From positions 18,228,001 through 18,292,000 of the forward strand of contig OZ365118.1 of NCBI GenBank assembly GCA_977030845.1: a DNA stretch of 64,000 nucleotides, read 5' to 3'. The notes below the pieces were generated by a model. It saw only the letters and a program-made list of their open reading frames with translations. It searched no databases and was not told where the DNA came from. The translations under genes were made by a program, and so were the position numbers. The DNA comes from Fimbriosthenelais zetlandica. Lineage: Eukaryota. Of the stretch, positions 10,601-30,389 are shown one piece after another. Position 1 is the stretch's first letter. Each line of letters starts with the position of its first letter.

Positions 10601-13600
10601 TCAGTCAGAACCGGAGACACATTAAATGGCCGACAGCCGGTCAGAGCATCAAATCAGATAAAGCCATACTATGGAACGCCTGCTTACTTCATGAGTTAAT
10701 CCCAAAATGTTATGTCCAGCTCATACTGAGTGCGATACAAATGACTCAACTCAACCCCGACATCCTCACCCCACAGAACGTCATGCAGGCCATCCCTAAC
10801 CTGCTGTCAGTGGATGAGAAGTGGAAGGGCCTGCTGGAGCCCTTCTTCAACTTGTTATTCATGCATCACGTCTTCTTCACTCAGTCTGTGGGTGATGAGA
10901 CCACCTATGGATCACGTCAGGTTTCTGCGCTGCGGGGCCGGTGGATCATGCTGGAGGAGAGCGTGTTTGACTGTATGAAGGAGACTGCCCCGTGTAAGGC
11001 AGTAGTCAAACAAGTCCTCATCGATGCTGGCGTCAAGGTAGTAGAGGTCCCCATGTGTGTCATCCACGCACTTGGAAGCTACGGCTCATACTCCCCTGAA
11101 ACCATCACACCGAACCTGCTCCGAGGAGCCGTCCGCTTCCACCCTGACACTTATAGGAAACTCTCTACCGGTGAACGCCTCACACTACTGGCTTACATGC
11201 TCAAAGATGAAGACTTCCCTGACCTGGAGGGCATCCAGATGCTGCCTCTAGATAATGGTCAGTTTGATATCTTCACTAATAGACCAGTAGCCTCCACCAT
11301 CTACATACCTACCACTGACCACCCGCGTGTCTTACTACCAGGCATGGGGCGGCGCCTCATCATGGACGACCTGGACAAAACCGTGCTGGAGAAATTAAAG
11401 AAACTGGCTCGCGAAGGTATATATTATTAAATCTTACTAAAAAATATTTTCCTTAATAAAATAATATTAGTCTAGGGCTCAAGATTAGAATAGAGTATGT
11501 GAAATTAATTAATAATCTTAGATTAGAATAGAGTATGTTAAATTTATTATATGAATTTAATCCAGAACATTGTACACTTTTTAAAATGTTCTAAATTGAA
11601 CATCTTTTCTAATAGGATTATTATTTTATTTCAGCTTGCTCTCAAGTCCGCCTGCTGCACAGAGAGGCTGTGATAAAGATGCTACCAGATGTCATCCCCC
11701 GAGACTGGATGCAGGAAGATGGTCAACCACTAGTCACCTACGACCCTTCTAACCCGCCCAGTGACACCTACCTCCCCCGGTCATGGTTCAGACATGTCTG
11801 GACCTACCTGCGTCATGAACTGCCTGGTAATCTAAACCCAGTAAACGGTCTACCCATCCTACCCCTGATAGACCGGGAGAACCTGATAGAACTAGTACCT
11901 CTCAACCTCCCCTCCACCACCGTGCTGGCCTCAGCCATGGGTACCTCTCTCACTCCAGACTGTATTAAAATATTAGATGTGAGTGGGCTGAGGGTGGTGA
12001 GAGATCTACCGGACTATGTACAAACCCACGCTGCTGTTATAGGCAACTACGTGAGGCTACCTCTAGCTGAGGACGTACTCGATGCTCTCACCACTGGACT
12101 AAACGCCAAAAAACTCAAACAAACCCAGGAGAAAATCAGAGACCTGACAACGGACAAGGAGAAGAGACATTTACGGTCCCTGCTGTCCAGGGTAGATCCT
12201 AGAAACATTGATGAGAGTCAGAGGAACACTGTTCGCTCCCTACCTGTGTTTCCTCTCTATAATAAAAACCAAGATGGTGAGCAGGTTTTTGTGAGTTTAG
12301 ATGAGGAGAAGCGAGCTGCTCCTCTATACATGCCTCCCATACACATCAGCATGCGACTGGTAGACGTGAAGGAGGACGATGCTAGACATTTAGCTAAAAT
12401 GGTGGGCGTGGTACCCATCCCTCTGTCTGTCTTACTCAAGGAATCAGTGTTGAAGGATTTAGTTGATGGGAAGTACAGCTCGGAGGATATCCAGCCTATC
12501 ATGGCGTTCACCACCCAGCACCTATCTAAACTCGTCATGGAGGATCAAGGTTTTGTGGACTATTTAAAGTCTCTACCCTTCGTCACCACCTCCGAGGGTC
12601 GGTTGGCGAAAGCTTCAGATCTATACAACCCACGGTCTGAGTTCCTACAGCGGCTCTTCTACGGCCAGGACATGTTCCCAGGCAGAGAGTACAGGCTGGA
12701 GATTGCTATAAATCTACTTCGCCAACTTGGTCTACGTGAGAAGAACCAGGTCACCTCAGACGAGCTGCTCCTGTGTGCTCAGTATATAGCCCAAACCTCA
12801 TCCAGCCCTGAGCCGATGGAGGACAATATTAAAGCTGCTCTAACATCAAAGGCTCAGCTCATACTGCAGTGCTTAGATCACAACCCTAACATACTGTATG
12901 AAGATGTCAATGAACTGCCCCTGGTCTGTAGCCTGATTGAGACTCCCTGGGTTCCTACCAATGATGAGAAACCATCACTCTACCCGGACAGTCTACCGTG
13001 GTATCAGTCCCCTGAATACTTCACCAGTCCTAAAGACATCAAGTCCGTGGAGTGGTACCATTTAGTAGGTTCAGTGATGAGTCTTAACACTCGTCAAGTG
13101 AGTCAGGAAGTGGCAGCATCATTCAGCTGGAGCCTTCCTCCGTCTGTATCAGTCGTCATCCGTCAACTTAACATGGTTATTGACAACTATAACAGTAAAG
13201 ACAAGGACAGGTACCTGATCATCATCACTAAAATATACCAGGAGCTGGCTGAGAACAATGTGACTCAACTAAAGCATACCCTGGACCAGCAGGAGATAAC
13301 TGAATGGGTGTGGAACGGTGATGGCTTCACAGCGTGTGATAAGATCTCAGTTCAGGCTCCCTTCATGGGACTTGAACCCTACATGTATTCTCTGCCCTCT
13401 GAGCTCATGAAGTACGAGGCTATGTTTCTAGAATGCGGCGCTAACCCTGTATGTGATGACAGATGCCTTGTGGACATTCTCAGTGCCATCTCTGACAAAC
13501 ATTCCAGTGATAAAGTAGATGCGGCATCCACACAGAGAGACCTACAACTTACCATCGATATACTCAACAAAATACAGAGTGACGAGAGCAGCTCACTAGG

Positions 13601-16600
13601 GGAGGAGCTGGAGGAGTTACTGCTCATCCCTGTAGCTACTGATGGAGTGGAGAAGCTGAGACTAGTACCAGTAACCGAGGCCACGTACTGTGATACAGAA
13701 TGGTTGAGGCAGGGTTTTGATCTAATGGAGTTTGATGAACAGGATGGTATTAACTTCATTCATCCCCTACTACCCACTAAGACGGCCGCGGCTTTTGGTG
13801 TGCCAACACTCATGAGTAGAATGCTTCACGCTGAGGAGTTAAATGTCACTGGATTTGGTCAGTCAGAACCCCTGACCAGTCGACTCAAACACTTACTACA
13901 AGATTACACCGATGGTCTAGCTATACCCAAAGAACTCATCCAGAACGCTGATGATGCTGGAGCCACTGAGGTGGCCTTCCTCTATGATGAGAGACATAAT
14001 TCTGATCACATGAAGTATCTGATAGATGAAGGTATGAAGGAGTGCCATGGACCTGCGCTCTGGGTTCACAATAATGCCCTCTTCTCTGATACTGACTTTG
14101 AGAACATCACTAAGCTTGGTGGGGCGACTAAAGAAACGCAGCCAGATAAAATCGGCAAGTTTGGTCTGGGTTTCAATGCTGTGTACAATGTAACAGACGT
14201 ACCAAGCTTCATCAGCCGTGATTTTATTGTCATCTTTGACCCACACACCACCCATCTGGGTAGAGGAATCCGTGATAGAACCAGACCAGGTATCAAAATT
14301 GAAATGAAGAAGAACAGGACTCTACTGAAGAAACTACCGGACCAGTTCCAGCCCTACCAGGGTGTGTTTGACTGTAATATATCCATGGATAACGACCAGC
14401 CGGCCAGTTATAACGGAACATTATTCAGACTGCCACTGAGAACATTACAGCAAGCTTCACGCAGTGAAATAAGTTCTATTCACTATGACAGAGATGAGAT
14501 GAGGAAACTGATCAAAATGATGATCGCTAGTGGATCCAATCTACTGCTGTACACTCAGAAAGTCACGTCTATCAAGTTCTACCACCTGCCAGCAGATGGT
14601 GAGAGTCCAGCTGATGCTAAGTTAATCTACCACGTGAATAAAGAGCAGGTTAGGGTGAGCAGGCCCTTGACTAACATCGCCACTAAACCTGTGACTACAT
14701 CCAGAAGTGCATTGAAAGTGAGTGTCCAACCAACGACGGCAGAGTTTAATATGTTAAAAGTCGGCAGTAACTTTCTTCAGAGTGTGGCTAAATCAAGGAG
14801 CCGCAAACTGGTGGGTGAATATGACTCTCCTGCCAAATCACTCGTGGTTAAAATCACTTGTGGTATAACAGAAGATGCCAAGAAGCTGCTGGAACTGAGT
14901 GAGAAGTCAGTGGATGATTATTGGTTACTCAGCTATGCCTGTGGCTATGGACAGTCTTTGACTATGGCATTAGAAGCGAGTGCCAAACAGAAGGGACATA
15001 ACACTATGGCTTCTGTGGCAGTGCCACTGAAACATACAGAAGATGGCTTCATACCAGTGGCTCTTGATGAAATACGGAAGAAAGGCATTGTATTCTGCTA
15101 CCTGCCACTACCAGGTACCAGTGGATTACCCGTCCATATCAATGGTTCATTCGCTGTACAGTCGAGTCGCCGATACCTGGCTGATCGGACAGAGGATGAC
15201 AAGGAGAATATCAGCGCTGAGTGGAATGAGGCGCTGATAGGAGATGCTGTATTGAGAGCCTATATACAAGCGATCAGAGACTCACAGTTATTAAGCCCCA
15301 CTGCCACTGCTATTAAATTCTACAGTCTGTGGCCGTGCAAGGCTCATGTAACACCCATGATGGCCACCCTACTACAAGGCTTCTATGATTACGTGGCAGC
15401 AAATCCTAGCATCCCAGCCTGGCATGATGGTTCACAACTTATCACCATGGAAAGGGCTGTATTTCTTGATCCACTCCTCGCCAAACGCCCCACCATCGCT
15501 GAACTAGTCATGGATGCTTTTAAACAGAATAAAAGCATTGCAAATGTGGTCGAAGTTCCACCTTTAATACTAGCAAGTCTAGAGAGCACGGGTCATTCTG
15601 AATTCATCCAAGGCAAAACCTACACCCAGGCGAGATTCTTCAAGGAAATATTCTTCCCAGACATTCAAGTCCTTGGACGAGAAACAAGAGACCCTCTGGT
15701 GCTATATGCTCTAGATAGGAACAACTCAGAGATGGACAATCTATTGAGGAATAACGCATGTATTCCAGTCACTCCTGATGGCAAGCAGCTACGTAAGCCA
15801 TGTGAGCTAGTCCATCCTGTCCTACAAGTGGCCAAGCTATACTCACCGGATGAAGGCTTCTTCCCGTGTGGAAAGGAGTTCATGGTTAGCCAACGTCTCG
15901 CTGCACTACAGAAGTTGGGCATGCAATCACAGGATCTGTCCTGGAACTGTGTCATAGAGAGAGCTCAGTCTATAGCCATCTTACTGCAGACTGATGGAGA
16001 AGCAGCTAAACAGCGGTCAGCACATCTTCTCACATTTCTTGATAGGAAACTGACAGTAAGTCAAAATCTGAAGGAAGAGGAACTGGAGCGAGCTCAGTGG
16101 GCTGGGAGCAAACTGAGACAGATTACATTCCTACCTCTGATGGAGAAACCAAAGGACTTCCCTCTACCCTGGAAGAACGATGAGTATGCACCTCATACAT
16201 TGCTGGCTCCTGATGATGTACAAGTGCGAGATTGGCTCTACCTGCTCTCTTCCACTCAGCCTGTAGTGGACGATGGCAGCATCATGACTCATCGCATCAA
16301 GTGCTTCCTTGGTATGAACACACGCAGGGTTGAAATAGAGCATGTCATGACTCAACTAGAACAAGCCATCAATGTCAACCCTCGATCACTCATTGCCAAG
16401 AAAACACTGGGTTACCTCCAGAAGGCCTGCTTCAAAATATACGATTTCCTACAGATGAAATGCTTAGAAGACGGCGTGACCGCACAGTTTGTGGCAGGGG
16501 CGCTTTCTGAGAGAAAATGTGTGCTAGTAAATGAAGATTTCCTAGCCCCCAAACAGTTGATTTTCGCTCCCTTGGCTGACTGTGCCCCCTACCTCTACAG

Positions 16601-19600
16601 TGTGCCTTCTGACATGGCACACAAGTTTAAGGACTTGTTACAGTTGCTGGGAGTGAGGGACAAGTTCTCAGTGGATGATCACATGTCTGTCATCCATGAG
16701 ATGCATAATAAGTCAGGGACTGAGCCGCTAGACCAGAGAGACCTGGAGCTGGCACTGAGAGCTGTAGCACTACTCAATGGTAGCATGAAGAGGGAAAAGA
16801 AGACAGCTCAACAGGTGGAGGAAGAACATGGTACTATATACATACCTAATGTAGCTGGTGTGTTACAACCAGCCTCGGTCCTCTGTTACAATGACTGTCC
16901 CTGGCTACAGAACACGGGTAATACTAACTTTACACATCAAGACATGACATACCAAGTCTCCACATTACTTGGTGTTAAAACCAAGAGACAAGAAGCCCTC
17001 CAGAAACATGCTCATGGTATCCCATTTGGACAGAAAGAAAGGCTGGCCAACAGCATCAAGAGGATCCTCAACAGCTACCCGTGTGATCATGAGATACTGA
17101 AGGAGTTAATTCAGAATGCTGACGATGCTCAGGCCACGGAGATTCATTTTGTGATGGATGGAAGACATCATTCAGAGAAACATTTATTTGATCGATCATG
17201 GCAGCCGCTACAGGGCCCAGGACTGGTGGTCTACAATAATAAACCATTCAAACAGTCTGACATAGAAGGTATACAGAAACTGGGGGAAGGCAGTAAAACT
17301 AACGACCCTAACAAGACAGGGCAGTACGGGGTGGGCTTCAGCTCAGTGTACCACCTCACTGATGTACCAGCTCTACTCACCGCCAGTGATGATCTCGGTG
17401 AAAATCTCTGTGTATTTGATCCTAACTGTCAGTATGTACCTGGAGCTACAGCAGCAGCTCCCGGTATGCAATACTCAGACATTAAAACATTACGAGAAAC
17501 CTTCCCTGATGTCTTCACCTGTTACATAGAAGATCAACTAGAACTGAAGAACGCCACCATCTTCAGATTCCCCCTGAGAAACGTCGCCATGGCCGCTAAA
17601 TCTGAGATCTCCAAGAAAGCCATCACCATGGCTCAAGTTCAGGGGCTCTTCCTCAAACTGAGGCAAGAAATATTTGACATACTCCTCTTCACAAACCATC
17701 TGACTAAAATCAGCATCTCTAACGTGGAAATAGCTACGGGCAAGATCAACAACACATACACAGTTCAGGCCATCCTCTCTGATGATGACATACAGAAACG
17801 TCATGATTTCTATGAGTATCTCTGCTCTGCTTCCACTAAACTCAAGGCTGGAGAGATTAAAATAGACGAGATCATCTCCCGCTCTATCACCTACAGGGTG
17901 AGAATATTTGACACCTTACAGAGGGAGGAGACATGGGTGGTATCTCAGCACATTGGTCTGGCTGAAGACACCCAGGTACCTGAGTCTATCATGACAGCTT
18001 TTGCTAACAGAGATCTGATGTTGCTACCAAGAGGTGGGTGTGCTGCACTACTGGAAAAACGCCATGAAGGCCAGCTAGTACAAGACAGTCAACCCAGGAA
18101 AGTCTTCTGCTTTTTGCCTCTGCCACTCGAGACTTCCCTGCCTATACATATTAATGGTCACTTTGCACTGGGCTATGAGAACAGGCGGCATATCTGGACA
18201 AATAGAGACGGTCCCGGTTACAAACAGGACTGGAATAACTTCCTGTCAACTGAGGTGCTGGCTCCAGCTTACCTCAACCTGATGCTGGGACTACGCATGG
18301 AGGGACTGAAGGCTGACATGAATGACAATGTGGCAGCTGTCTACTGTCAGAGACAGCTACTAGACAGCGCAATCAAAGCATACCAGTTATACTTCCCTGA
18401 CTTTGATGAAGCCAGACCACAGTGGAATCCTCTAGTCACCAGCTTCTACCAGAAAAGTGCTACCAGTGAAACACCTCTACTCCCGGCGGTCAAGGAAGAC
18501 TTGAGGCAGTTACAGAATGGACCTGCAGGAGCACAGAACAACAGCCAGCAGTGGAACGTGCTGTGGCTGTCACCTAAAGGCCAGGGCAGGAAGAAAGCCT
18601 TCTTCACACAGATGGACAAGTCAGACCCAGTAGAGGAACAGACATCACTTCTTGGTAAATTCAAGAATTACTTCCGCAGCTCGCAGCAGCCAGCTGTTAA
18701 GTCCGAGCATCAGATTCTCAAGGAAGTTTTACTTGATTGTAATTTTAAACTTCTTGAAGCCAGTCAGAGAATCATGGACAACTACCAGATGGCTGAGGTG
18801 GAGATCGACTTCATGTCTCCTGAAGGTGTTCTCCTATTCTTCCAGAGTTACTCCAGTGAGGCACCCATGTGTGACCTCTCTCCCCTCCCAGCTCCACTCC
18901 ACCAAACTCCATTCCGTGATGAAGTCACACTGAAAATAGTCCTCAAATACTGCCAGCAAGATAATCGATTCCTGGAGAAGTTAGACGGCACGCCACTCCT
19001 CCTCACTGGTGACAGTCAGCTGAGAGTATTCAGTGTGGAGGAGCCAGTGTTTTATACTCTCTATAATGATCTCATACCTGAATGTGGAGGCCGCTTTCTA
19101 CACCGCGTCATGCAGACTGAGGTGTTTAATGGAATCAACCCTGATCAGGTACCAGTCTTTACTCCACTCAGTATAGACACTCTCAGCACCATCCTTGAAC
19201 ACCGCCTCTCCACCGAGCAGTACTTTGAGAAGAGTGAGCCAGTAAAATGGTCACGTGGTATCACCCAGCCAGTGAGCACCTCGTGGATACAGAAGGTTTG
19301 GAGCTTCATCCGATCTCAGACAGAGGACTTATTTAAAAGGCGTGACCTGGAGGGGAAAGAACTGAGGAATGAACTCCAGGCCAGACTACAGCCTGTTGAA
19401 GATTGGTCTATCATACCAGCTAAAACACCCACTGATTCTTACCTAGTGTCGCTGAAAAACGCCCACAACATCCTGGACCTGCGGCAGGTAGAGGTGAGCG
19501 ACTACGGACTGAGGGAAGTCCTGCGGCAGATGAAAACACCAGAGCTGGCCTGTGATGTACTCAACATAGAATCAACCAGGAGTTCTGACCTGCTGCACCA

Positions 19601-22205
19601 CATGGTCACCACTCTAGATAGACCATTCGCAGTCTTAAGAATTGTGCATAAAAATGTGACCAATGAGAAGTATGCCATCAATACGAACCCTCGTGATTCA
19701 GAGAAGATACTGCGCTACTTCAGTGAGAATATAGACAAGATGGATGACGCTAGTGAAGCTTTTGATCTGCTATGTGCGCTGCCTTTCTACCGTACCATAC
19801 ACGATGATATGATCAGCATTACAGGCTGCCTGGTCTACACACTCCCACCCAAAATACCAACCAATGACATCGATATCTGGCAGAGCAAGTCAGGAACTGT
19901 CTTCCTGGAACGTAATGACAGACTAGCTCCACTTTATAACTTCCTGAAATGTGCCATGATTAGTACAACTGAGGTTTACTGTCAGTTCATCCTCCAGCAC
20001 TTTGAGTACCTGTCACCTGACGCCAGGACGGTACATCTAAAACATATCTACCACCACTACCTGAGAGACGGACCAGGCACCGACTCTAATCTAACAGAGG
20101 AGGAGAAACAGGAGCTGATGGAATCACTCCGAGGGTTAAACTTTATAGAGGACAGGGATGGAGTGCTTCATCAAGCCAGTGAGTTCTATGATCCAGAGAA
20201 TGTCTTATTCAGAGTGATGCTCACTGAAGAGAAGCTCCCGCCACGCGCTGGCTCTCAGTTCAGGGAGTCAGAGTGGCTCAATCTACTGAGGAAGTTAGGT
20301 CTGCAGAGTGAGGTCACCAAGGAACAGGTGGTCGGGTTCGCTCAGCAGGTGGCTCACGAGGGGAAGCTGGGAGATTCAGGCCATGCTGTAGCCAGGTCTA
20401 AAACACTAACAGAACACCTACTCACCATGCAGAACACATTCAGAGATGAAATCCTAGAGACAGTCTCAGAGGTCCCATTCATCGCCCCAGAGAAAGTCCA
20501 CCGCGATCTAAACGCCATCTACCCTCAGTACGGGGACGCTGGTAATGGTACAATGCCCTTTGTATCTTTTAAAGACAGTTTATCTAGAGATTATGAGAAT
20601 GTAGTGTGGACCAGAGCAAGTCTACTCCCATCATGGGCTGATCCAATGAAGCAGAACCTTCCACAGGAGGACCGCCTGGAGCTGATGGAATGTCTGGGTG
20701 TACAGAAGAAACCTCCCGCCAAGCTAGTCGTCTCTCATCTCATCAATCTGTGTGAACATGTCTCCTCACAGAGAGACCAGTCTCTGCTGGAAGCCCCGGC
20801 TAAAAGACATACACTGAAGACGGCTTATAAAGCGGCCTATCGCTATCTTCAGGACAACGGACTGGAGGACACCGAGGTGAAGGACCGGCTGAAGGATGAG
20901 CCGTGTGTACTGGTGGACGATGGTAGGAAGTTAATGGAGGCTCACTACACTGCCATTAACATGTATGAATCAGAGGAGATCAGACCCTACCTCTATAAAG
21001 TACCCGTGGAACTGGGTGAGTTCCATGTTCTCTTCCAACACATCGGTTCCACAGACAAACCGTCAGTTGACCAGTATGCCTCAGTCTTAGAGAGACTGCA
21101 GAAGAAGTCCGGCGGTCTGAAACTGACACCAAAGGAGCTGATGATCGCGTTTAGAGCAGTGAAGGGTTTATTTACATCACTGGAGGACGCGGAGGGACAG
21201 CGGGATATTAACACACAATGTCTGTACATACCCAGTGAGTCAGGCCATCTCATTGACTCATCATGCCTCGTCTTTAACGATGCTCCACACTTCTATGACA
21301 GAGTCACTGGCTTCGGTCTTCAGTTCTTATTTGATGTAAAGGAATGTGGGATGAAGTTTAGAAACATTGAGGACCTCCTGTGCCGCCTGCCTCAGAAGCT
21401 CCGTCCTGGAGTCCTCAGCAGCTATGTGAAGGAATGCCTGGTGGAGAAAGCCAAGAGAAGCGTGACAACGACAGGCATCGCCGCCGACCTGGCGCAGAGA
21501 CTGACATGTGAAGTGTTCATGAAGGCCGTCATGAGACTGGTACGTCATGAGACTAACCGGTCAGGACGTAAACTGGAGGAGCAGAGTATGTTCGACATCC
21601 TGGACAGACTGTCTACTATACATGTATACGCCGTCACCCAGCTTATGACACACCTCACCTATAAAGGCCGACCCATTAAAGGTAGTCACGTGGATAAAAC
21701 ATGCTTCGTGGAGAAAGTCCTAGGTCGACCTGACACATGGAATGTCTACATACGTGAAGATGCGAAATTAGAGCAGGATCTACTCATACCACTAGCTGAT
21801 GTCATTAACTCTATACTCAACGGTATACTCCGTGACTCGGTCCTCTTCCTCCTCCCCATCCTCGCCTGCCGACTAGATGAGATTGACCACAAACTGGACA
21901 GTCTAAATGTCCGGCTTGACCAGTCACAGGTGACCAAGCGGGTCTCTACCCTGCCCTCCCCCGGGACACCGGTCCACCCTGACCACCTCCTGCTCCTCCA
22001 CCAGGATGAAGATGAGAGTCTGGTGACTGATCAGTATGTAGCTTATAAAGAATCACCAGACTCACACCCCCTCTATGCTAAAGTCATAGAAGGTGGGCTG
22101 GACGAGTATGGCAAGAGTGTGGGTGATATTTACCTCGTTAATCTAGGTGAAGATAAAGACTGTGTTATTGCCTCTAAACAGTGTCTATACAGCCTGGACA
22201 GATAG
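7689..22205 (+). CDS. SACS: Sacsin-like protein, 4213 aa. Coding exons 7689-7737, 8195-8295, 8542-8658, 8866-9013, 9452-9579, 9889-11416, 11635-22205
   Basis: Exon lengths sum to 12642 nt (4214 codons); all junctions are GT-AG and in phase. Three sacsin HATPase-like repeats: [72 protein letters not shown], each followed by GTLFR/FPLR and FCF/YLPLP..GLPV/IHING motifs. Giant 10,571-nt last coding exon. In-frame TAG at 7659 lies upstream of the ATG. Confidence 0.93.
8043..8215 (+). repeat. 58-59 bp tandem triplication spanning a sacsin splice acceptor
   Basis: TGTGTATGAC(C/T)GTTATTCTAG|GCTC(T/G)CTA(A/G)TGGAG occurs three times (AG ends at 8077, 8135, 8194). Confidence 0.9.
9775..9848 (+). repeat. 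Intronic approx. 29-bp tandem repeat x3
   Basis: AATTATCAATAT(A/G)AAA core repeated three times. Confidence 0.8.
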
Positions 22206-23600: not shown

Positions 23601-24264
23601 TATTGGTTAATATAAAATAAACCCTTTTAGCACCTTATTCAGTACACCCTGTCGAACAATGGCTTACCAACTTCGTACAATACTGTTATTTGTGTGTCAA
23701 TGTACAGACAATAATACTTTGACATTCGTCAATTAAGTCATACAGATTGGTGAAGTTTTCTTAGTTTTCATGGCTTTCTCAGAAATATTAGAAACAAAAG
23801 GCTTGAGGTGCAACAGATGGACATGTTTTAAAACCAGTTAACCTATGATATGAGCTAATGTAGACATTGTTACGTCATTGTTTTTCATCATATTATCTTG
23901 AATAAAACACTTTATTCTAGAGGAACAAAACGTTACTACTTTTACTATCTGCTTTTAGATAGGGTCCAGAATAGATTCTATGGCAGGGATAGTGTGAGCA
24001 TGTTACATGTTTTAACCTGGGTTATCTTATCATAGCGGACGTTAGGCTTTCAAGGTGTCTCACTCTTATCTCGGTTCATGGGTGACTATACTTGATAACT
24101 GATAAGTTGACTTAGATACACCAATCCAAGCTGTTCCATACCTTCTACATTATCATATATACCTATATTTATCTTGAATTAACCGTCGCTTCTTCCTATC
24201 CATGTTTGGTACATATTATGAAAAAATCTTGGATCTTTTTTTAAAGTTACTTGGCATCTAATGA

Positions 24265-25860
24265 TCAAGACTCTTTTTGCTTTGATCCCATGAAAATATT
24301 TCGGCGAATACAACGCCAACATGTTCTTAACAAGATAAAGATGATGGAGATGAGAATGATAAAGATGGTGAATAGAAAGCCTAGGACGTCGACACAGTAG
24401 AGCTGTAGAGTAGACAGGTCAGTCAAGGCGTCACACGTCAGTCTGGCCGCTCCTTTATGCCGCATCATGTACTCAGCGTAGAAGATGAACCGTTGTTTGG
24501 CCGTCAAGGGATGGTCTTTAAGAAGCTGTGAGTTGTACACCGCTCTCTCCTTGTATTTCACCTCATCCAGTACTTGCCTTATTCCATGCTCCAGGCTTGT
24601 ACTGGTCATTGTGTGCATGTCCACGTGCACGCCCATCTGGGCGTTCTTGGTCAGTTTGACGGCGTTATCGTGTTGGTCAAACATGAGGGGAATAGCCACC
24701 ACTGGTACACCATGATGAAGAGCTTCATACGTACCGTGTATTCCACAATGAGTGATGAACACCTTGGTGTTAGGATGAGCCAGGAGATCATTCTGAGGTA
24801 GCCAGTCTAACAGCATGGTATTGTTAGCCAGGTTAGGCGGGGCTACGGTGCTCGCCAGTCGCCAGATGACCCTTTGTTTTAATGTACCAAGCACCCCGGC
24901 TATTAACTCAGTTTTAGACGCGTCCATTTGGTCAATCAATGAACCAAATGAGACGAGAACCACCCCGGCCCGCCCTGCCCCGTCCATGAAGTCTTTTATA
25001 TGTGCCTCCAGTGGTTGAACGTTTGGTACATGCATCCCTCCCACCAGCACCACATTGGGCAGCAAAGGTCGCGAGTCCTCCAGCACAAAATCTGTGTGAG
25101 ACACATACATCTGGTCTGTAAAGGCATTAGTCAGTGACCGTGTGTTTTCACCCTGATTAATGCCATACTTTTGTTGTAGATCTTCAAAAGTTCCTATAAA
25201 CGAAGGCTCAACCAATTCTTTTATAGCGAACATGATACAAAAGTTCTTGACCCTTTGTATAAATGTCATTCTGCTGGTCAATTTGGAGAAAGGAGTTGGG
25301 ACAATGGACGGGAGGTTTGGGAATAAAGCTGGGTCATGTACCAGACCAGTGCTGGAGTAGGCCATGGTAGGTACCCCCAGATAGATGCTCAATACCCGCC
25401 CACAACTCTCAACAAAGTCCACAATGAGCAGATCAAACTGCTCATCTTTGAGTTGCTCCAGTAAAACCTTGTGTTTGAGGAGCTCTTCACACAAGGTGGC
25501 ATGTGCTTCTAGAAGGTTATTAAGAACCTGCGTCATGCTACGCACAGAGCTGTCTGACTTCATAAACTTGTCCTTCCGTGACTGATCGGCAATGAAGGGG
25601 TTCCTTGTTGGTGGTGCTGAGTAAATGTAAAAGTTGACTTTGGGGACCTTCTCTAAATGAACCCTGTCCTCCTGGTTCACCAAAATGGTCACATTGTGCC
25701 CAGCTTCACTGAGATAATAACCCATGTTCCTCATGTCCACCAATCTGCTTGTAAATCCATGGCCATAGGGGAACAGCAGCACCCGACCTGCATTGACCCC
25801 GCTTAAAACGACAGATATTAGTCCTAGAATGGACCACAGTGTCCTCACAGGCCCTGTCAT
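24265..25860 (-). CDS. UGT: UDP-glucuronosyl/glycosyltransferase (GT1, membrane-bound UGT), copy A, 531 aa, intronless CDS
   Basis: Signal peptide, FDLLIVD, VSFGS, full UGT signature WLPQNDLLAHPNTKVFITHCGIHGTYEALHHGVPVVAIPLMFDQHDNA, C-terminal TM (YCVDVLGFL...) and KxKxx ER-retention tail (KQKES). Confidence 0.96.
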   Translation of the reverse strand: MTGPVRTLWSILGLISVVLSGVNAGRVLLFPYGHGFTSRLVDMRNMGYYLSEAGHNVTILVNQEDRVHLEKVPKVNFYIYSAPPTRNPFIADQSRKDKFMKSDSSVRSMTQVLNNLLEAHATLCEELLKHKVLLEQLKDEQFDLLIVDFVESCGRVLSIYLGVPTMAYSSTGLVHDPALFPNLPSIVPTPFSKLTSRMTFIQRVKNFCIMFAIKELVEPSFIGTFEDLQQKYGINQGENTRSLTNAFTDQMYVSHTDFVLEDSRPLLPNVVLVGGMHVPNVQPLEAHIKDFMDGAGRAGVVLVSFGSLIDQMDASKTELIAGVLGTLKQRVIWRLASTVAPPNLANNTMLLDWLPQNDLLAHPNTKVFITHCGIHGTYEALHHGVPVVAIPLMFDQHDNAVKLTKNAQMGVHVDMHTMTSTSLEHGIRQVLDEVKYKERAVYNSQLLKDHPLTAKQRFIFYAEYMMRHKGAARLTCDALTDLSTLQLYCVDVLGFLFTIFIILISIIFILLRTCWRCIRRNIFMGSKQKES

Positions 25861-28529
25861 TGTCCTTTATAGGCGATGTATATGCTTTCTAGTTGCTATG
25901 CCTGTTCCAGGTTGATTCCACACCAAATAATAAGTCAGTATTTAATAATTCCTGAAATTATTATGTCATGGATAGGTGACAAAATAAGAAGAGTCCAAGG
26001 TTCAAGTACACTGGGTATATGAGTTAGCCTGATAATGCTTCAATGGTAGTACCTCAGACCAATGTCATGTGATTCATTTATCAACTGATTTAAAGTAATA
26101 GCTATTATATACATGTAGAGTAATAGCTATATTTAGTACACAGTTGTGTGCTTTTGTTTACGTATAGACCAATTCCTAATGTTAGAGACACGTCTAGGGT
26201 CTGTCTAGACACGTGCTTCGATACAATTGGAAAGTTATATAATTTCTAACAGTAGGTCAATGACTTGAAGCACATAATTAGAATGGTCCCAGGTGAAAAT
26301 GTAGTAACACATGTAAAGTAATAGCTATATCATGGGATCCAAAGGTGATCCATGGCTCACCTTTCTTTGCTGATTCTTTAATATCAGCTGTGGGTCTGTT
26401 CCTGACATATATATCCTTCCTCACAGTGGACTTTATGTTCCCCAGCCCTGATAGATCCTAAAGCGGTGGTAATTCACAGTATGAATGACATGACATGACA
26501 TGTATATATATATCACCCTCCACACCAGCGGTCACCAGATCCAGGTCTCCCACCTATACTTAATCTATTGTTGACTTAGTTCACTGACCCACTTTATTCC
26601 CCACTACCTTATACACCACACAGGTTTTATGAACTTTTTCGTTTCCTGATCATGTTTCCCTGATCATGACCCTTTTCTGCTCTCCCTCACTAGGTTGCAG
26701 CACAAGTTAAATTGTTTCTGAGCGAATGAATGAGTGGCAGGGGTTTTTGGAGGGAGAAAGTAATCTGTGGTGTAACAGTTGGGTATTTTTCAGGGTTTTC
26801 TGACACATGATGTATGACTCTTACTGAATGTTTGACTATATGATGGCCAGGTTAAACTCTACTAGCTTTTTAGGTAGTATTTTTTTGGCAAATATAACGA
26901 AAAGTTTGATCTATTTCTGTACCAATCCATTGTCGAGATCCATGACTTGGATGCTAGTTCCTTCATGGTACCCTCTACCTATAACTAAGGGACCCAGATA
27001 AAGGATTATGATTATGGATTTAGCCCTAATATTAACGTGTTTTCATTCAGCATTAGCCTTGTGCTGACTGAATAACAACAATCTGTCTAGCCAGCCATCA
27101 ACTGTAACATTGGCTTGCCAGGACAAAGCCAGACAGCCCTGTCTTTGTGCACTTTATCTTTTGGGCCCATCCTCACCCATCCCTCCTCTCCCTTCTTTAC
27201 CATCAGAAAGCTGCCACTGAATAAAGAGAGAGTGGGAGGAGAAAAAAGAAGCCGGATTAACAAGAAGTGTGGAGGGAGACAGAGACAAGGTGGCAGGCGG
27301 TTTTGTTTGCTGGTGAGGACAATTTGTTGTCTTTGAGTAGAATGACTGGCTTGTCGCTTCCCATCGCCACCGATCCGCTCCACCCATAGACCGGCACTGA
27401 CAGGGGGAGACGGGGGCCTTCCTAATCACTAAATCACTTTATTTTACTTCTGGAATTGTTCTTCTATTGTCCATCACAGGTATAGAAGGGGCGGGGGAGG
27501 TGCTGGCACGGGCTATTTGCTGGCTTGTCAAGCCTGGGAACTGGCAAGAAAAGGGGGAAAGAATTAAGATGCACCTTTTTCATCTTGGATGATTTGCTAT
27601 GGTCCACGAAAAGTCCTATTTTAACTTTTCACACTTAGTTGATTGAAATTCGTGTGATTCTCCCTCTCCATTGGATTTTACGTACATTTATTAACGGTTG
27701 CTAAAACATACTGCTTTGGATGATGGATATATGATACAGTCAGATCTTATGAACAGAACCATTTCATAATCTACTGTTACTTTATATGTTATGTCATATT
27801 GATGCCTGGCTCAACCATTGGCCACTTTCAGTCATGGTATGTGGTTCCAGGTGAAGCATCTAAGGCAGCTGGTTGATGACTTTACTACAGTGCCCACTCT
27901 ACTAACCCTGACCACTTGTAAAGACCACTCAACTTCCTCTACACTGCTGTTACCTTGGCAACCATCTATCTAATAGAAATATTCCCTCTAGCACGAGGTG
28001 GTTAGATACTGTAAGGACATAGGTCTGCTCATCCCTCTGTTAGCTACTCCAGCATATTGGTCCCCTCTCACAGAACTGTCCCCCAGACTTCACACGTCAG
28101 ATATAGTAGAGCCCGTCAGTTCATGGGTTTGTAGATTACGTTTTGATGACCTCTCTCACAGAGGTAACTAGTCATTATCAATGTACCCAGCCCTGATGGC
28201 CATCACTTAGGTCAATGACCACATGGTCACATTATTTTAATTCCATACAATGCCGTTATTCCAGTGTTGTCATTCATCAATTTATTCAGACAAATATGTG
28301 AACAGAAAGTGTTTTCTTACCAATACACAGAAATGACGGACATAATTTTGTCAGTTTGGGATAAAACGGATAGAATTGATTCAAATTAGGCCCTATAGAC
28401 ATATTATCACTATGTGGAACATTATTCTAGAAAAAGAATTTTATTCTAGAAAAAGTCTAAATACTTTCATATCATGTTTGCTTCTTAATTATAATGCGAA
28501 AACAAATGCTTTTTAAAAGTGTTTCGCCA

Positions 28530-30116
28530 TCAGGCCACTTTTTGCTTTGAACTCTTGTGAAGAACACAACGCCAACATGTTCTAAACAAGATAAAGACGA
28601 TGGAGATGAGAATGATAAAGATGGTGAATAGAAAGCCTAGGACGTCGACACAGTAGAGCTGTAGAGTAGACAGGTCAGTCAAGGCGTCACACGTCAGTCT
28701 GGCCGCTCCTTTATGCCGCATCATGTACTCAGCGTAGAAGATGAACCGTTGTTTGGCCGTCAAGGGATGGTCTTTAAGAAGCTGTGAGTTGTACACCGCT
28801 CTCTCCTTGTATTTCACCTCATCCAGTACTTGCCTTATTCCATGCTCCAGGCTTGTGCTGGTCATTGTGTGCATGTCCACGTGCACGCCCATCTGGGCGT
28901 TCTTGGTCAGTTTGACGGCGTTATCGTGTTGGTCAAACATGAGGGGAATAGCCACCACTGGTACACCATGATGAAGAGCTTCATACGTACCGTGTATTCC
29001 ACAATGAGTGATGAACACCTTGGTGTTAGGATGAGCCAGGAGATCATTCTGAGGTAGCCAGTCTAACAGCATGGTATTGTTAGCCAGGTTAGGCGGGGCT
29101 GCGGTGCTCGCCAGTCGCCAGATGACCCTTTGTTTTAATGTACCAAGCACCCCGGCTATTAACTCAGTTTTAGACGCGTCCATTTGGCCAATCAATGAAC
29201 CAAATGAGACGAGAACCACCCCGGCCCGCCCTGCCCCGTCCATGAAGTCTTTTATATGTGCCTCCAGTGGTTGAACGTTTGGTACATGCATCCCTCCCAC
29301 CAGCACCACATTGGGCAGCAAAGGTCGCGAGTCCTCCAGCACAAAATCTGTGTGAGACACATACATCTGGTCTGTAAAGGCATTAATCAGTGACCGTGTG
29401 TTTTCACCCTGATTAATACCATACTTTTGTTGAAGATCTTCAAAAGCTCCAGTATAAATAGGCTTCACCACCGCCATTGCAACTAACATGATCAAAAAGT
29501 TCTTGACCCTTTCTGTGAAGCTCATTCTGCTGGTCATCTTAGTAATAGGCAAAGGGACTATGGAAGGGAGATTCGGGAATAAAGCTGGATCAGGTTCCAA
29601 GCCAGTGCTGGAATAGACCATAGTCGGAACCCCGAGATGTAGAGTCAGAACCCTACCACAGCTGTCTCCGTAATCCACAATGAGCAGATCAAACTGCTCA
29701 CCTTTGAGTTGCTCCAGTAAAACCTTTTGTTTGAGGAGCTCTTCACACAAGGCGGCTTGTGCTTCTACAAGGTTATTAAGAACCTGCGCCAAGCCACCCA
29801 CCGAGTTGTGTGACTTCATAAACTTGTCCTTCCGTGACTGATCGGCAATGAAGGGGTTCCTTGTTGGTGGTGCTGGGTAAATGTAAAAGTTGACTTTGGG
29901 GATCTTCTCTAAATGAACCCTGTCCTCCTGGTTCACCAGAATGGTCACATTGTGCCCAGCTTCACTGAGATAATAACCCATGTTCCTCATGTCCACCAAT
30001 ATGCTTGTAAATCCATGGCCATAGGGGAACAGCAGCACCCGACCTGCATTGACCCCGCTTAAAACGACAGATATTAGTCCTAGAATGGACCACAGTGTCC
30101 TCACAGGCCCTGTCAT
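28530..30116 (-). CDS. UGT: UDP-glucuronosyl/glycosyltransferase, copy B, 528 aa, intronless CDS
   Basis: Same architecture and signature as copy A, collinear at a 4256-bp offset; tail KQKVA. Confidence 0.96.
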   Translation of the reverse strand: MTGPVRTLWSILGLISVVLSGVNAGRVLLFPYGHGFTSILVDMRNMGYYLSEAGHNVTILVNQEDRVHLEKIPKVNFYIYPAPPTRNPFIADQSRKDKFMKSHNSVGGLAQVLNNLVEAQAALCEELLKQKVLLEQLKGEQFDLLIVDYGDSCGRVLTLHLGVPTMVYSSTGLEPDPALFPNLPSIVPLPITKMTSRMSFTERVKNFLIMLVAMAVVKPIYTGAFEDLQQKYGINQGENTRSLINAFTDQMYVSHTDFVLEDSRPLLPNVVLVGGMHVPNVQPLEAHIKDFMDGAGRAGVVLVSFGSLIGQMDASKTELIAGVLGTLKQRVIWRLASTAAPPNLANNTMLLDWLPQNDLLAHPNTKVFITHCGIHGTYEALHHGVPVVAIPLMFDQHDNAVKLTKNAQMGVHVDMHTMTSTSLEHGIRQVLDEVKYKERAVYNSQLLKDHPLTAKQRFIFYAEYMMRHKGAARLTCDALTDLSTLQLYCVDVLGFLFTIFIILISIVFILFRTCWRCVLHKSSKQKVA

Positions 30117-30389
30117 TATCCTGTGGGTTCAAGAAGCCTTAAAATTGTTGAGAATCTCTTCGGAAACGGCTCTTTTTAACGCAGGAAAAGATTAGTAGTG
30201 AAGTGACTAGCTGGATGAAGTATAGCATTTTATAGTCACATTAGGCCGGGTTTCCTTTCTGATAGATCTGCAGGCAGTCTTATATAATAACCATGGGTTA
30301 TGTTATGGTTGCCAGTAGACCTGCATGGTCTTTTGACGGTCTCACTGTACCTGTTGTCTCTCTGGCTATTGAGTCAGTGAATTAGCCCC

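Follow-up and report, generated by a model that had tools for sequence, protein, structure and literature searches.

We analysed a window of 64,000 nucleotides (nt) from Fimbriosthenelais zetlandica (GenBank assembly GCA_977030845.1, contig OZ365118.1, forward-strand positions 18,228,001 to 18,292,000), which contains no N. A tblastn search of this window found matches to UDP-glycosyltransferases (UGTs), enzymes of detoxification, at two tandem genes only, from here UGT-A and UGT-B or simply A and B. The two genes are nearly identical along most of their length but differ strongly in one segment of the acceptor-binding domain. Their features are, in window positions with codons numbered after A:

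24265-25860, minus strand: UGT-A, an intact intronless open reading frame (ORF) of 531 amino acids (aa); it lies beside sacsin and is the positional orthologue of the lone UGT of related species
28530-30116, minus strand: UGT-B, an intact intronless ORF of 528 aa, in tandem and in the same orientation as A, 2.7 kb upstream of it
25861-28529, no strand: spacer between A and B, unique sequence except for one interspersed repeat at 26129-26301
25555-25860 (in B 29811-30116), minus strand: codons 1-102, the homogenised N-terminal tract, in which 4 of 306 nt differ
25420-25554 (in B 29676-29810), minus strand: codons 103-147, a sub-block with low synonymous divergence and an excess of amino-acid differences, comprising helices 106-128 and 131-140
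25159-25419 (in B 29415-29675), minus strand: codons 148-234, the old divergence island (dS 1.11, dN 0.19, dN/dS or omega 0.17)
24310-25158 (in B 28566-29414), minus strand: codons 235-517, homogenised, with the entire donor-binding C-terminal domain and the transmembrane helix
24265-24309 (in B 28530-28565), minus strand: codons 518-531 plus stop, the diverged cytoplasmic tail with a 9-nt indel

The mosaic was read from the assembled sequence of one assembly, and differences were counted in a global nucleotide alignment. This reproduced the hand counts of an earlier note on the same DNA, with 4 differences over A nt 1-306 and 6 in the 830 nt from A nt 671 to 1500 (window 24361-25190); the 39 differing residues among the 122 of codons 103-224 were recovered as well. 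Residues 1-102 are 97% identical between the two proteins, and dS over the whole gene is 0.11. The last ~45 nt of the coding sequence (CDS) have diverged and carry the 9-nt indel; the tail of B resembles that of paralogue C, the nearest relative in the genome, and the tails of A and B both end in KxKxx. The earlier note had described the variable block as sharply bounded. This holds for the 5′ edge of the island, whereas the change at the 3′ edge is somewhat more gradual (3 differences within nt 671-731), and the block is two-tiered, an old island (codons 148-234) lying beside the young-looking codons 103-147.

Synonymous (dS) and nonsynonymous (dN) divergence between A and B was calculated per segment by the Nei-Gojobori method, and fourfold-degenerate sites were counted in codons that encode the same residue in both genes:

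codons 1-102: dS 0.014, dN 0.013, 0 of 45 fourfold sites differ
codons 103-147: dS 0.034, dN 0.113, 1 of 15 fourfold sites differs
codons 148-234: dS 1.11, dN 0.19, 13 of 26 fourfold sites differ
codons 235-517: dS 0.005, dN 0.008, 0 of 134 fourfold sites differ

Synonymous divergence is hence some 100-200-fold apart between segments of one and the same ORF pair, and the uniform dS that would have spoken against the earlier note was not found. The contrast is significant at fourfold sites both between island and C-terminal block (13/26 versus 0/134, Fisher P = 2.4e-12) and in a coarser split (14/41 inside the variable block versus 0/179 outside, Fisher P = 7.5e-12). Setting the island by itself against the fourfold sites outside the block (13/26 versus 0/179) gives P ~1e-12. 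A Sawyer-type permutation of polymorphic sites returned P ~2e-4, and a two-breakpoint maximum chi-square scan located the core of highest divergence at A nt ~444-670, where 66 of 227 positions differ. Constraint on synonymous sites was ruled out as an explanation for the identical blocks, because the same blocks have a dS of 1.5 or are saturated when A is compared with paralogue C.

Outside the CDS the similarity ends. Homology detected by blastn is confined to 24264-25866 versus 28529-30122, beginning ~5 nt 5′ of the ATG, and the 1.5-kb upstream and downstream flanks gave Smith-Waterman scores at or near the shuffle level, in agreement with the claim of the earlier note that the flanks do not align. 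Nor is the spacer homologous to what lies upstream of B. An internal control is provided by a recent UGT duplication between C11:35.58-35.59 Mb (L037/L038) and C1:65.32 Mb (L040), which spans two UGT genes plus the intergenic DNA and is 96-98% identical over at least 7 kb; it is a recent segmental duplication or else a duplicated region of the assembly. As the recent duplicate keeps flanks of 96-98% identity while those of A and B are unalignable, the A/B flanks are older than the converted tracts.

Two further observations concern the non-coding DNA of the locus. In both copies the homology starts at AG/GAYA immediately before the ATG (25861-25866 and 30117-30122), which could be a candidate 3′ splice site of an intron in the 5′ untranslated region. 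The repeat at 26129-26301, 270-440 nt upstream of the UGT-A ATG, is an interspersed element of ~170-190 nt resembling a short interspersed element or a miniature inverted-repeat transposable element; more than 500 first-look candidates occur genome-wide, and the 39 copies that were scored share 86-90% identity.

Interlocus (non-allelic) gene conversion between A and B is well supported by these comparisons. The pair combines heterogeneous synonymous divergence and long identical fragments with flanks, an island and a 3′ tail that are older than the tracts. The proposal of the earlier note that conversion homogenises the constant parts finds good support in the synonymous contrast within one ORF pair and in the unalignable flanks.

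The history that these data suggest is as follows. A and B would descend from an old tandem duplication of a single sacsin-adjacent UGT, after which the neutral flanking DNA diverged past alignment. Conversion between these partners, which lie 4.3 kb apart (spacer 2.7 kb) in the same orientation, would recently (dS ~0.01) have overwritten one copy with the sequence of the other over codons 1 to ~147 and ~225/235 to ~506-517, the tracts reaching from the ATG homology edge to ~nt 443 and from ~nt 671-700 to ~nt 1518. The two genes would thereby have come to share their signal peptide, the first third of the acceptor domain, the donor (UDP-sugar) domain and the membrane anchor. An island of 230-260 nt (codons 148 to 224/234), its synonymous divergence near saturation, and the 3′ tail would have been left unconverted. 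This island begins at the catalytic Asp148 and is predicted to run through the loop and the long helix that wall the acceptor pocket. Conversions that overwrote the island, or the amino-acid differences beside it, would have been removed by selection. We lean, with modest confidence, towards this combination of old tandem duplicates, recent conversion and an island maintained by selection.

The age of the duplication was assessed from paralogues and relatives. The assembly comprises 447 Mb in 79 contigs, and a protein search of the whole genome found at least 81 UGT matches, nearly all of them single ORFs. The nearest paralogue, C (G000:C38, L003), shares 66% amino-acid identity. Genome protein search, DNA searches with the 261-nt islands and tblastn of the window revealed no third copy closer than 66% at the amino-acid or 75% at the nt level; the sole match of each island version in the assembly is the other copy, at 75% identity. 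Two related species were included, here sp2 (Logan contigs L059-L061, protein P0121/P0001) and sp3 (ENA contig L062, protein P0002). The sp2 UGT is 57% identical to A and, like A, lies convergent to a SACS gene; one UGT lies beside SACS, on a contig that stops 694 nt upstream of it, so that a possible second copy would be beyond view. The sp3 UGT is 49% identical to A in the order MFS - UGT - SACS, without a second UGT within 10 kb of it; its MFS neighbour is absent from the 64-kb window.

In the tree of the gene outside the island, A and B are separated by 0.02 substitutions per site and group as ((A,B) 100/99, C) 100/99, followed by sp2 (98/98). In the island tree the A-B distance is 0.53 substitutions per site and the A+B grouping is weak (76/78), the groupings B+C and A+C not being rejected. 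The relative A-B depth differs ~12-fold between island and rest of the gene. Orthology of the A island to the sp2 gene, that is, a duplication predating that split, was rejected (approximately unbiased test, p-AU 0.018). By the island and rest-of-gene trees, the A/B duplication is placed in this lineage, later than the branching-off of sp2 and about as deep as the origin of paralogue C, and most of the CDS looks ~25 times younger than the duplication.

The neighbouring sacsin-like gene lies ahead of A and B as an ORF of 3511 aa on the plus strand (11670-22205). The convergent SACS-UGT pair is kept in the two other species, with sacsin nt identities of 72% and 65%, and in all three species the sacsin-like gene is a single ORF of ~3500 aa.

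A and B are members of the UDP-glycosyltransferase family (PF00201, GT1/GT-B). Both match PF00201 (UDPGT) at full length over profile positions 10-498/499, far above the curated cut-off of 19.5 bits (A 343.7 bits, E 2.6e-102; B 333 bits, E 4.3e-99). The 44-residue donor signature (W-x2-Q-...-H-x-G-...-D-Q) is present, A and B are identical across this region, and its residues W353, P355, Q356, N357, D358, L359, L360, H371, G373, E379, P386, P391, D395 and Q396 are invariant in an alignment of 89 sequences. An AlphaFold2 (AF2) model of A (predicted local distance difference test, pLDDT, 90.3; predicted template modelling score, pTM, 0.88) has the two-domain GT-B fold, and its top solved matches in Foldseek were TuUGT202A2 of the spider mite (8SFW), YojK and OleD, at probability 1.00. 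In a sequence search of solved structures, animal UGTs of the endoplasmic reticulum (ER) type were represented by human UGT2B C-terminal domains only (e.g. 6IPB, 2O6L). Inspection of the two proteins showed in each a signal peptide, a C-terminal transmembrane (TM) helix (model helix 490-529) and the KxKxx ending. The closest named proteins are ~30-33% identical.

The catalytic His-Asp dyad is incomplete. D148, equivalent to the catalytic D151 of UGT1A1, is present, and the position of UGT1A1 H39 is occupied by Arg39 in A and Ile39 in B (codon 39, window 25744-25746 and 30000-30002, respectively). Elsewhere Arg39 was found in sp2, sp3 and the paralogues L004, L005 and L010, and His39 in paralogue C, L007, P0003 and P0004. 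Ile39 is unique to B and is among only three amino-acid differences of the homogenised N block. A conserved His34 lies just upstream in a 'PYGHGF' loop and might substitute for the catalytic His39. Human UGT1A4 and UGT2B10 are active N-glucuronidases without this His, so its loss is compatible with UGT activity, and the missing His39 does not exclude family membership or activity.

The variable block was mapped onto the acceptor pocket using the AF2 secondary structure and an alignment of A to primate UGT1A1 with the pocket residues of PMC1885805. In the model it comprises helices 106-128 and 131-140, strand 144-148, helix 153-161, strand 165-169, loop 170-199 and helix 200-231, all elements from the catalytic Asp148 and helix 153-161 onwards falling within the island. 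Asp148 lies in the island together with three regions that form the pocket according to Li & Wu 2007 (PMC1885805), and the residues corresponding to H39, F153, F170, F181 and F221 of UGT1A1 are not the same in A and B. On this modelled mapping, acceptor-binding block is a fair description of codons 148-234, while residues 1-102, which hold one of the acceptor domain's hypervariable regions, are constant between A and B. Purifying selection acts on the island in A as well as in B, so the products of both genes are probably functional ER-membrane UGTs that share a donor module and have different acceptor pockets; the substrate specificities of A and B are inferred to differ.

Several observations bear on selection. 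The island's omega of 0.17 indicates that both versions are constrained, and its differences are evenly split (34 nonsynonymous, 34 synonymous). In codons 103-147, 11 of the 12 differences are nonsynonymous and 1 is synonymous, a ratio that departs from that of the island (P = 0.0097). Nonsynonymous differences are 12 times as dense there as in the homogenised parts (P = 4e-7), synonymous ones are no denser (P = 0.27), and at the dS of the flanking segments ~1 neutral nonsynonymous change would be expected (Poisson P = 2e-8). Even the homogenised parts hold 8 nonsynonymous against 2 synonymous differences (P = 2e-4 under a long-term omega of 0.09), one of them the B-specific change at position 39, the catalytic-base position. 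Variability across 87 other UGTs is 2.23 bits for residues 25-102 and 2.08 bits for the island, yet residues 25-102 are homogenised, which makes it less likely that the island arose from low protein constraint by itself.

The dN/dS values of the variable block, to which the earlier note had pointed as informative, are therefore of two kinds, constraint in codons 148-234 and a nonsynonymous surplus in codons 103-147. Selective protection of the island is plausible on these figures. Other points weigh against it. The excess of dN over dS in codons 103-147 is not significant alone (binomial P = 0.22), and a single synonymous difference leaves the age of this sub-block uncertain. The 29% divergence of the island is enough to block heteroduplex formation without selection. 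The A/B differences sit on columns that are variable family-wide, which fits low constraint as well as specificity. Finally, a fourfold divergence that is higher here than in the C domain is common even for UGTs on different contigs.

A neutral divergence barrier is the main rival to selective protection. Under the same conversion mosaic, the island would merely have diverged past the identity threshold for heteroduplex formation or mismatch-repair tolerance, so that tracts stop at its edges. An established model has paralogues escape conversion in such a sequence-dependent way (Walsh 1987, reviewed in PMC3449122), the 71% identity of the island core lies below usual conversion thresholds, an omega of 0.17 is ordinary purifying selection only, and many UGT pairs of the genome, cross-contig pairs included, share the elevated fourfold divergence in this region. 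A mechanical barrier would not lead one to expect that the equally variable residues 25-102 were homogenised, nor the 11:1 and 8:2 nonsynonymous excesses of codons 103-147 and the converted parts. We regard a neutral island as possible, though we would not expect it to be the answer. The proposal of the earlier note that selection protects the specificity segment consequently stands in part: the constraint on the island and both excesses agree with it, and the barrier explains the island itself equally well.

Alternatively, the whole CDS might have been homogenised first and a tract of ~230-260 nt then imported into one copy from a third paralogue, now lost or unassembled. Single conversion tracts in metazoans typically have about the length of the island, whose 5′ edge is sharp, and the family has at least 81 matches in the genome. 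No donor was found in the assembly, where each island version matches the other copy only, and the 64-kb window holds just two UGTs. Moreover, A and B remain mutually nearest in the island tree (76/78), A+sp2 is rejected there, and the diverged 3′ tail and unalignable flanks already demand an old A/B divergence, all of which renders such an import improbable.

An artefact, in which the near-identical blocks reflect paralogue collapse or cross-polishing in the assembly, has still less in its favour. Paralogue differences of ~1% can be erased by polishing with multi-mapping short reads, but 447 Mb in 79 contigs and a window free of N suggest long reads spanning the 5.9-kb locus with its unique 2.7-kb spacer. 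Eleven scattered differences persist inside the 'identical' blocks, both ORFs are intact, and other UGT pairs form a continuum of divergence with several further domain-restricted mosaics among them; an artefact appears very improbable. That the whole gene was duplicated recently and its acceptor block alone then went through a burst of positive selection can practically be dismissed. The nonsynonymous excess in codons 103-147 would speak for it, but it is rejected for the island by near-saturated synonymous divergence (dS 1.11, 13/26 fourfold sites, omega 0.17), and the A/B flanks are unalignable, unlike those of a genuine recent duplicate in this genome.

Related mosaics occur elsewhere among the UGTs of this genome. 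At least three other clusters show a C domain that is near-homogenised (4-15% of fourfold sites differing) beside a saturated N domain (50-79%):

L044/L043, C11:0.65 versus 0.375 Mb, 275 kb apart: fourfold differences in N-domain blocks 11/14 and 10/20, in the C domain 5/117
L026/L041, C25:28.59 Mb, tandem: N domain 11/20, C domain 8/108
L027 or L028 with L030, C11:48.51 Mb, tandem: N domain 17-19 of 23-26, C domain 11-15 of ~100

With the whole N domain variable and the C domain constant, these three look closer to the pattern of the vertebrate UGT1 locus than A/B does. Domain-restricted concerted evolution may be a design common to the at least 80 intronless UGTs, in which conversion would keep the donor and membrane module uniform and selection would exclude the pocket segments; we put this forward tentatively and with considerable doubt. 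If true, it would be a functional analogue, at the DNA level, of exon sharing in vertebrate UGT1, with A/B as its sharpest case.

For UGT biology, the pair is a natural experiment on structure and function: donor domain, anchor and first third of the acceptor domain are identical, and 39 residues in one segment plus position 39 differ. Block-swapped A/B chimeras could show which part of an animal UGT N domain sets acceptor specificity. The locus is also a warning for annotation and phylogenetics, as the whole-gene dS and whole-gene trees would date the duplicate as young though the locus is old.

Compared with known animal ER-membrane UGTs, A and B agree in the PF00201 match, donor signature, GT-B fold, signal peptide, TM helix and KxKxx tail, and depart from the canonical members in the replaced catalytic His (Arg39/Ile39) and the absence of introns. 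Conversion among the clustered protocadherins is reportedly region-restricted and spares the ectodomains that determine specificity. The variable exons of that cluster resemble A/B in that conversion acts among physically close tandem members (Noonan et al. 2004, as cited in PMC1885805, PMC2819257); unlike A/B, they belong to one transcription unit and to a different protein family.

In the vertebrate Ugt1/Ugt2 clusters, gene conversion was reported not to be predominant, diversity arising via birth-and-death evolution together with positive selection in four hypervariable pocket regions (Li & Wu 2007, PMC1885805). Conversion acting in an invertebrate UGT cluster would differ from this mainly birth-and-death mode (PMC1885805), and in the open-access text searched we found no paper that describes such a conversion mosaic for UGTs of invertebrates. 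Like A/B, the vertebrate UGT1 locus combines an identical donor-binding C-terminal domain with different acceptor-binding sequences. There, variable first exons are spliced to the shared exons 2-5, whereas A and B are separate, complete genes of a single exon that each encode a C-terminal domain of their own, and their constancy would be kept by copying at the DNA level. The variable unit of UGT1 is the whole acceptor domain; in A/B only residues 103-234 vary and the first 102 are constant. The UGT1-like modularity suggested by the earlier note is accordingly apt for the outcome, the same donor module with a different pocket, and fails for the mechanism and the module boundaries, given constant residues 1-102 and the lack of shared exons.

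The closest parallels, both reviewed in PMC3449122, are the red and green opsins of primates (Deeb et al.) and, in humans, RHD/RHCE (Innan 2003), which like A/B are linked paralogues that were homogenised while a short specificity segment was kept different, with synonymous divergence strongly heterogeneous along the gene pair. A/B differ from them in gene family and phylum, in that the retained block is a contiguous stretch of ~260 nt with near-saturated dS rather than a few codons, and in that the case for selection is here indirect. The UGT pair is a clean new example of a well-described class, conversion sparing a functionally distinct patch, and involves no new mechanism.

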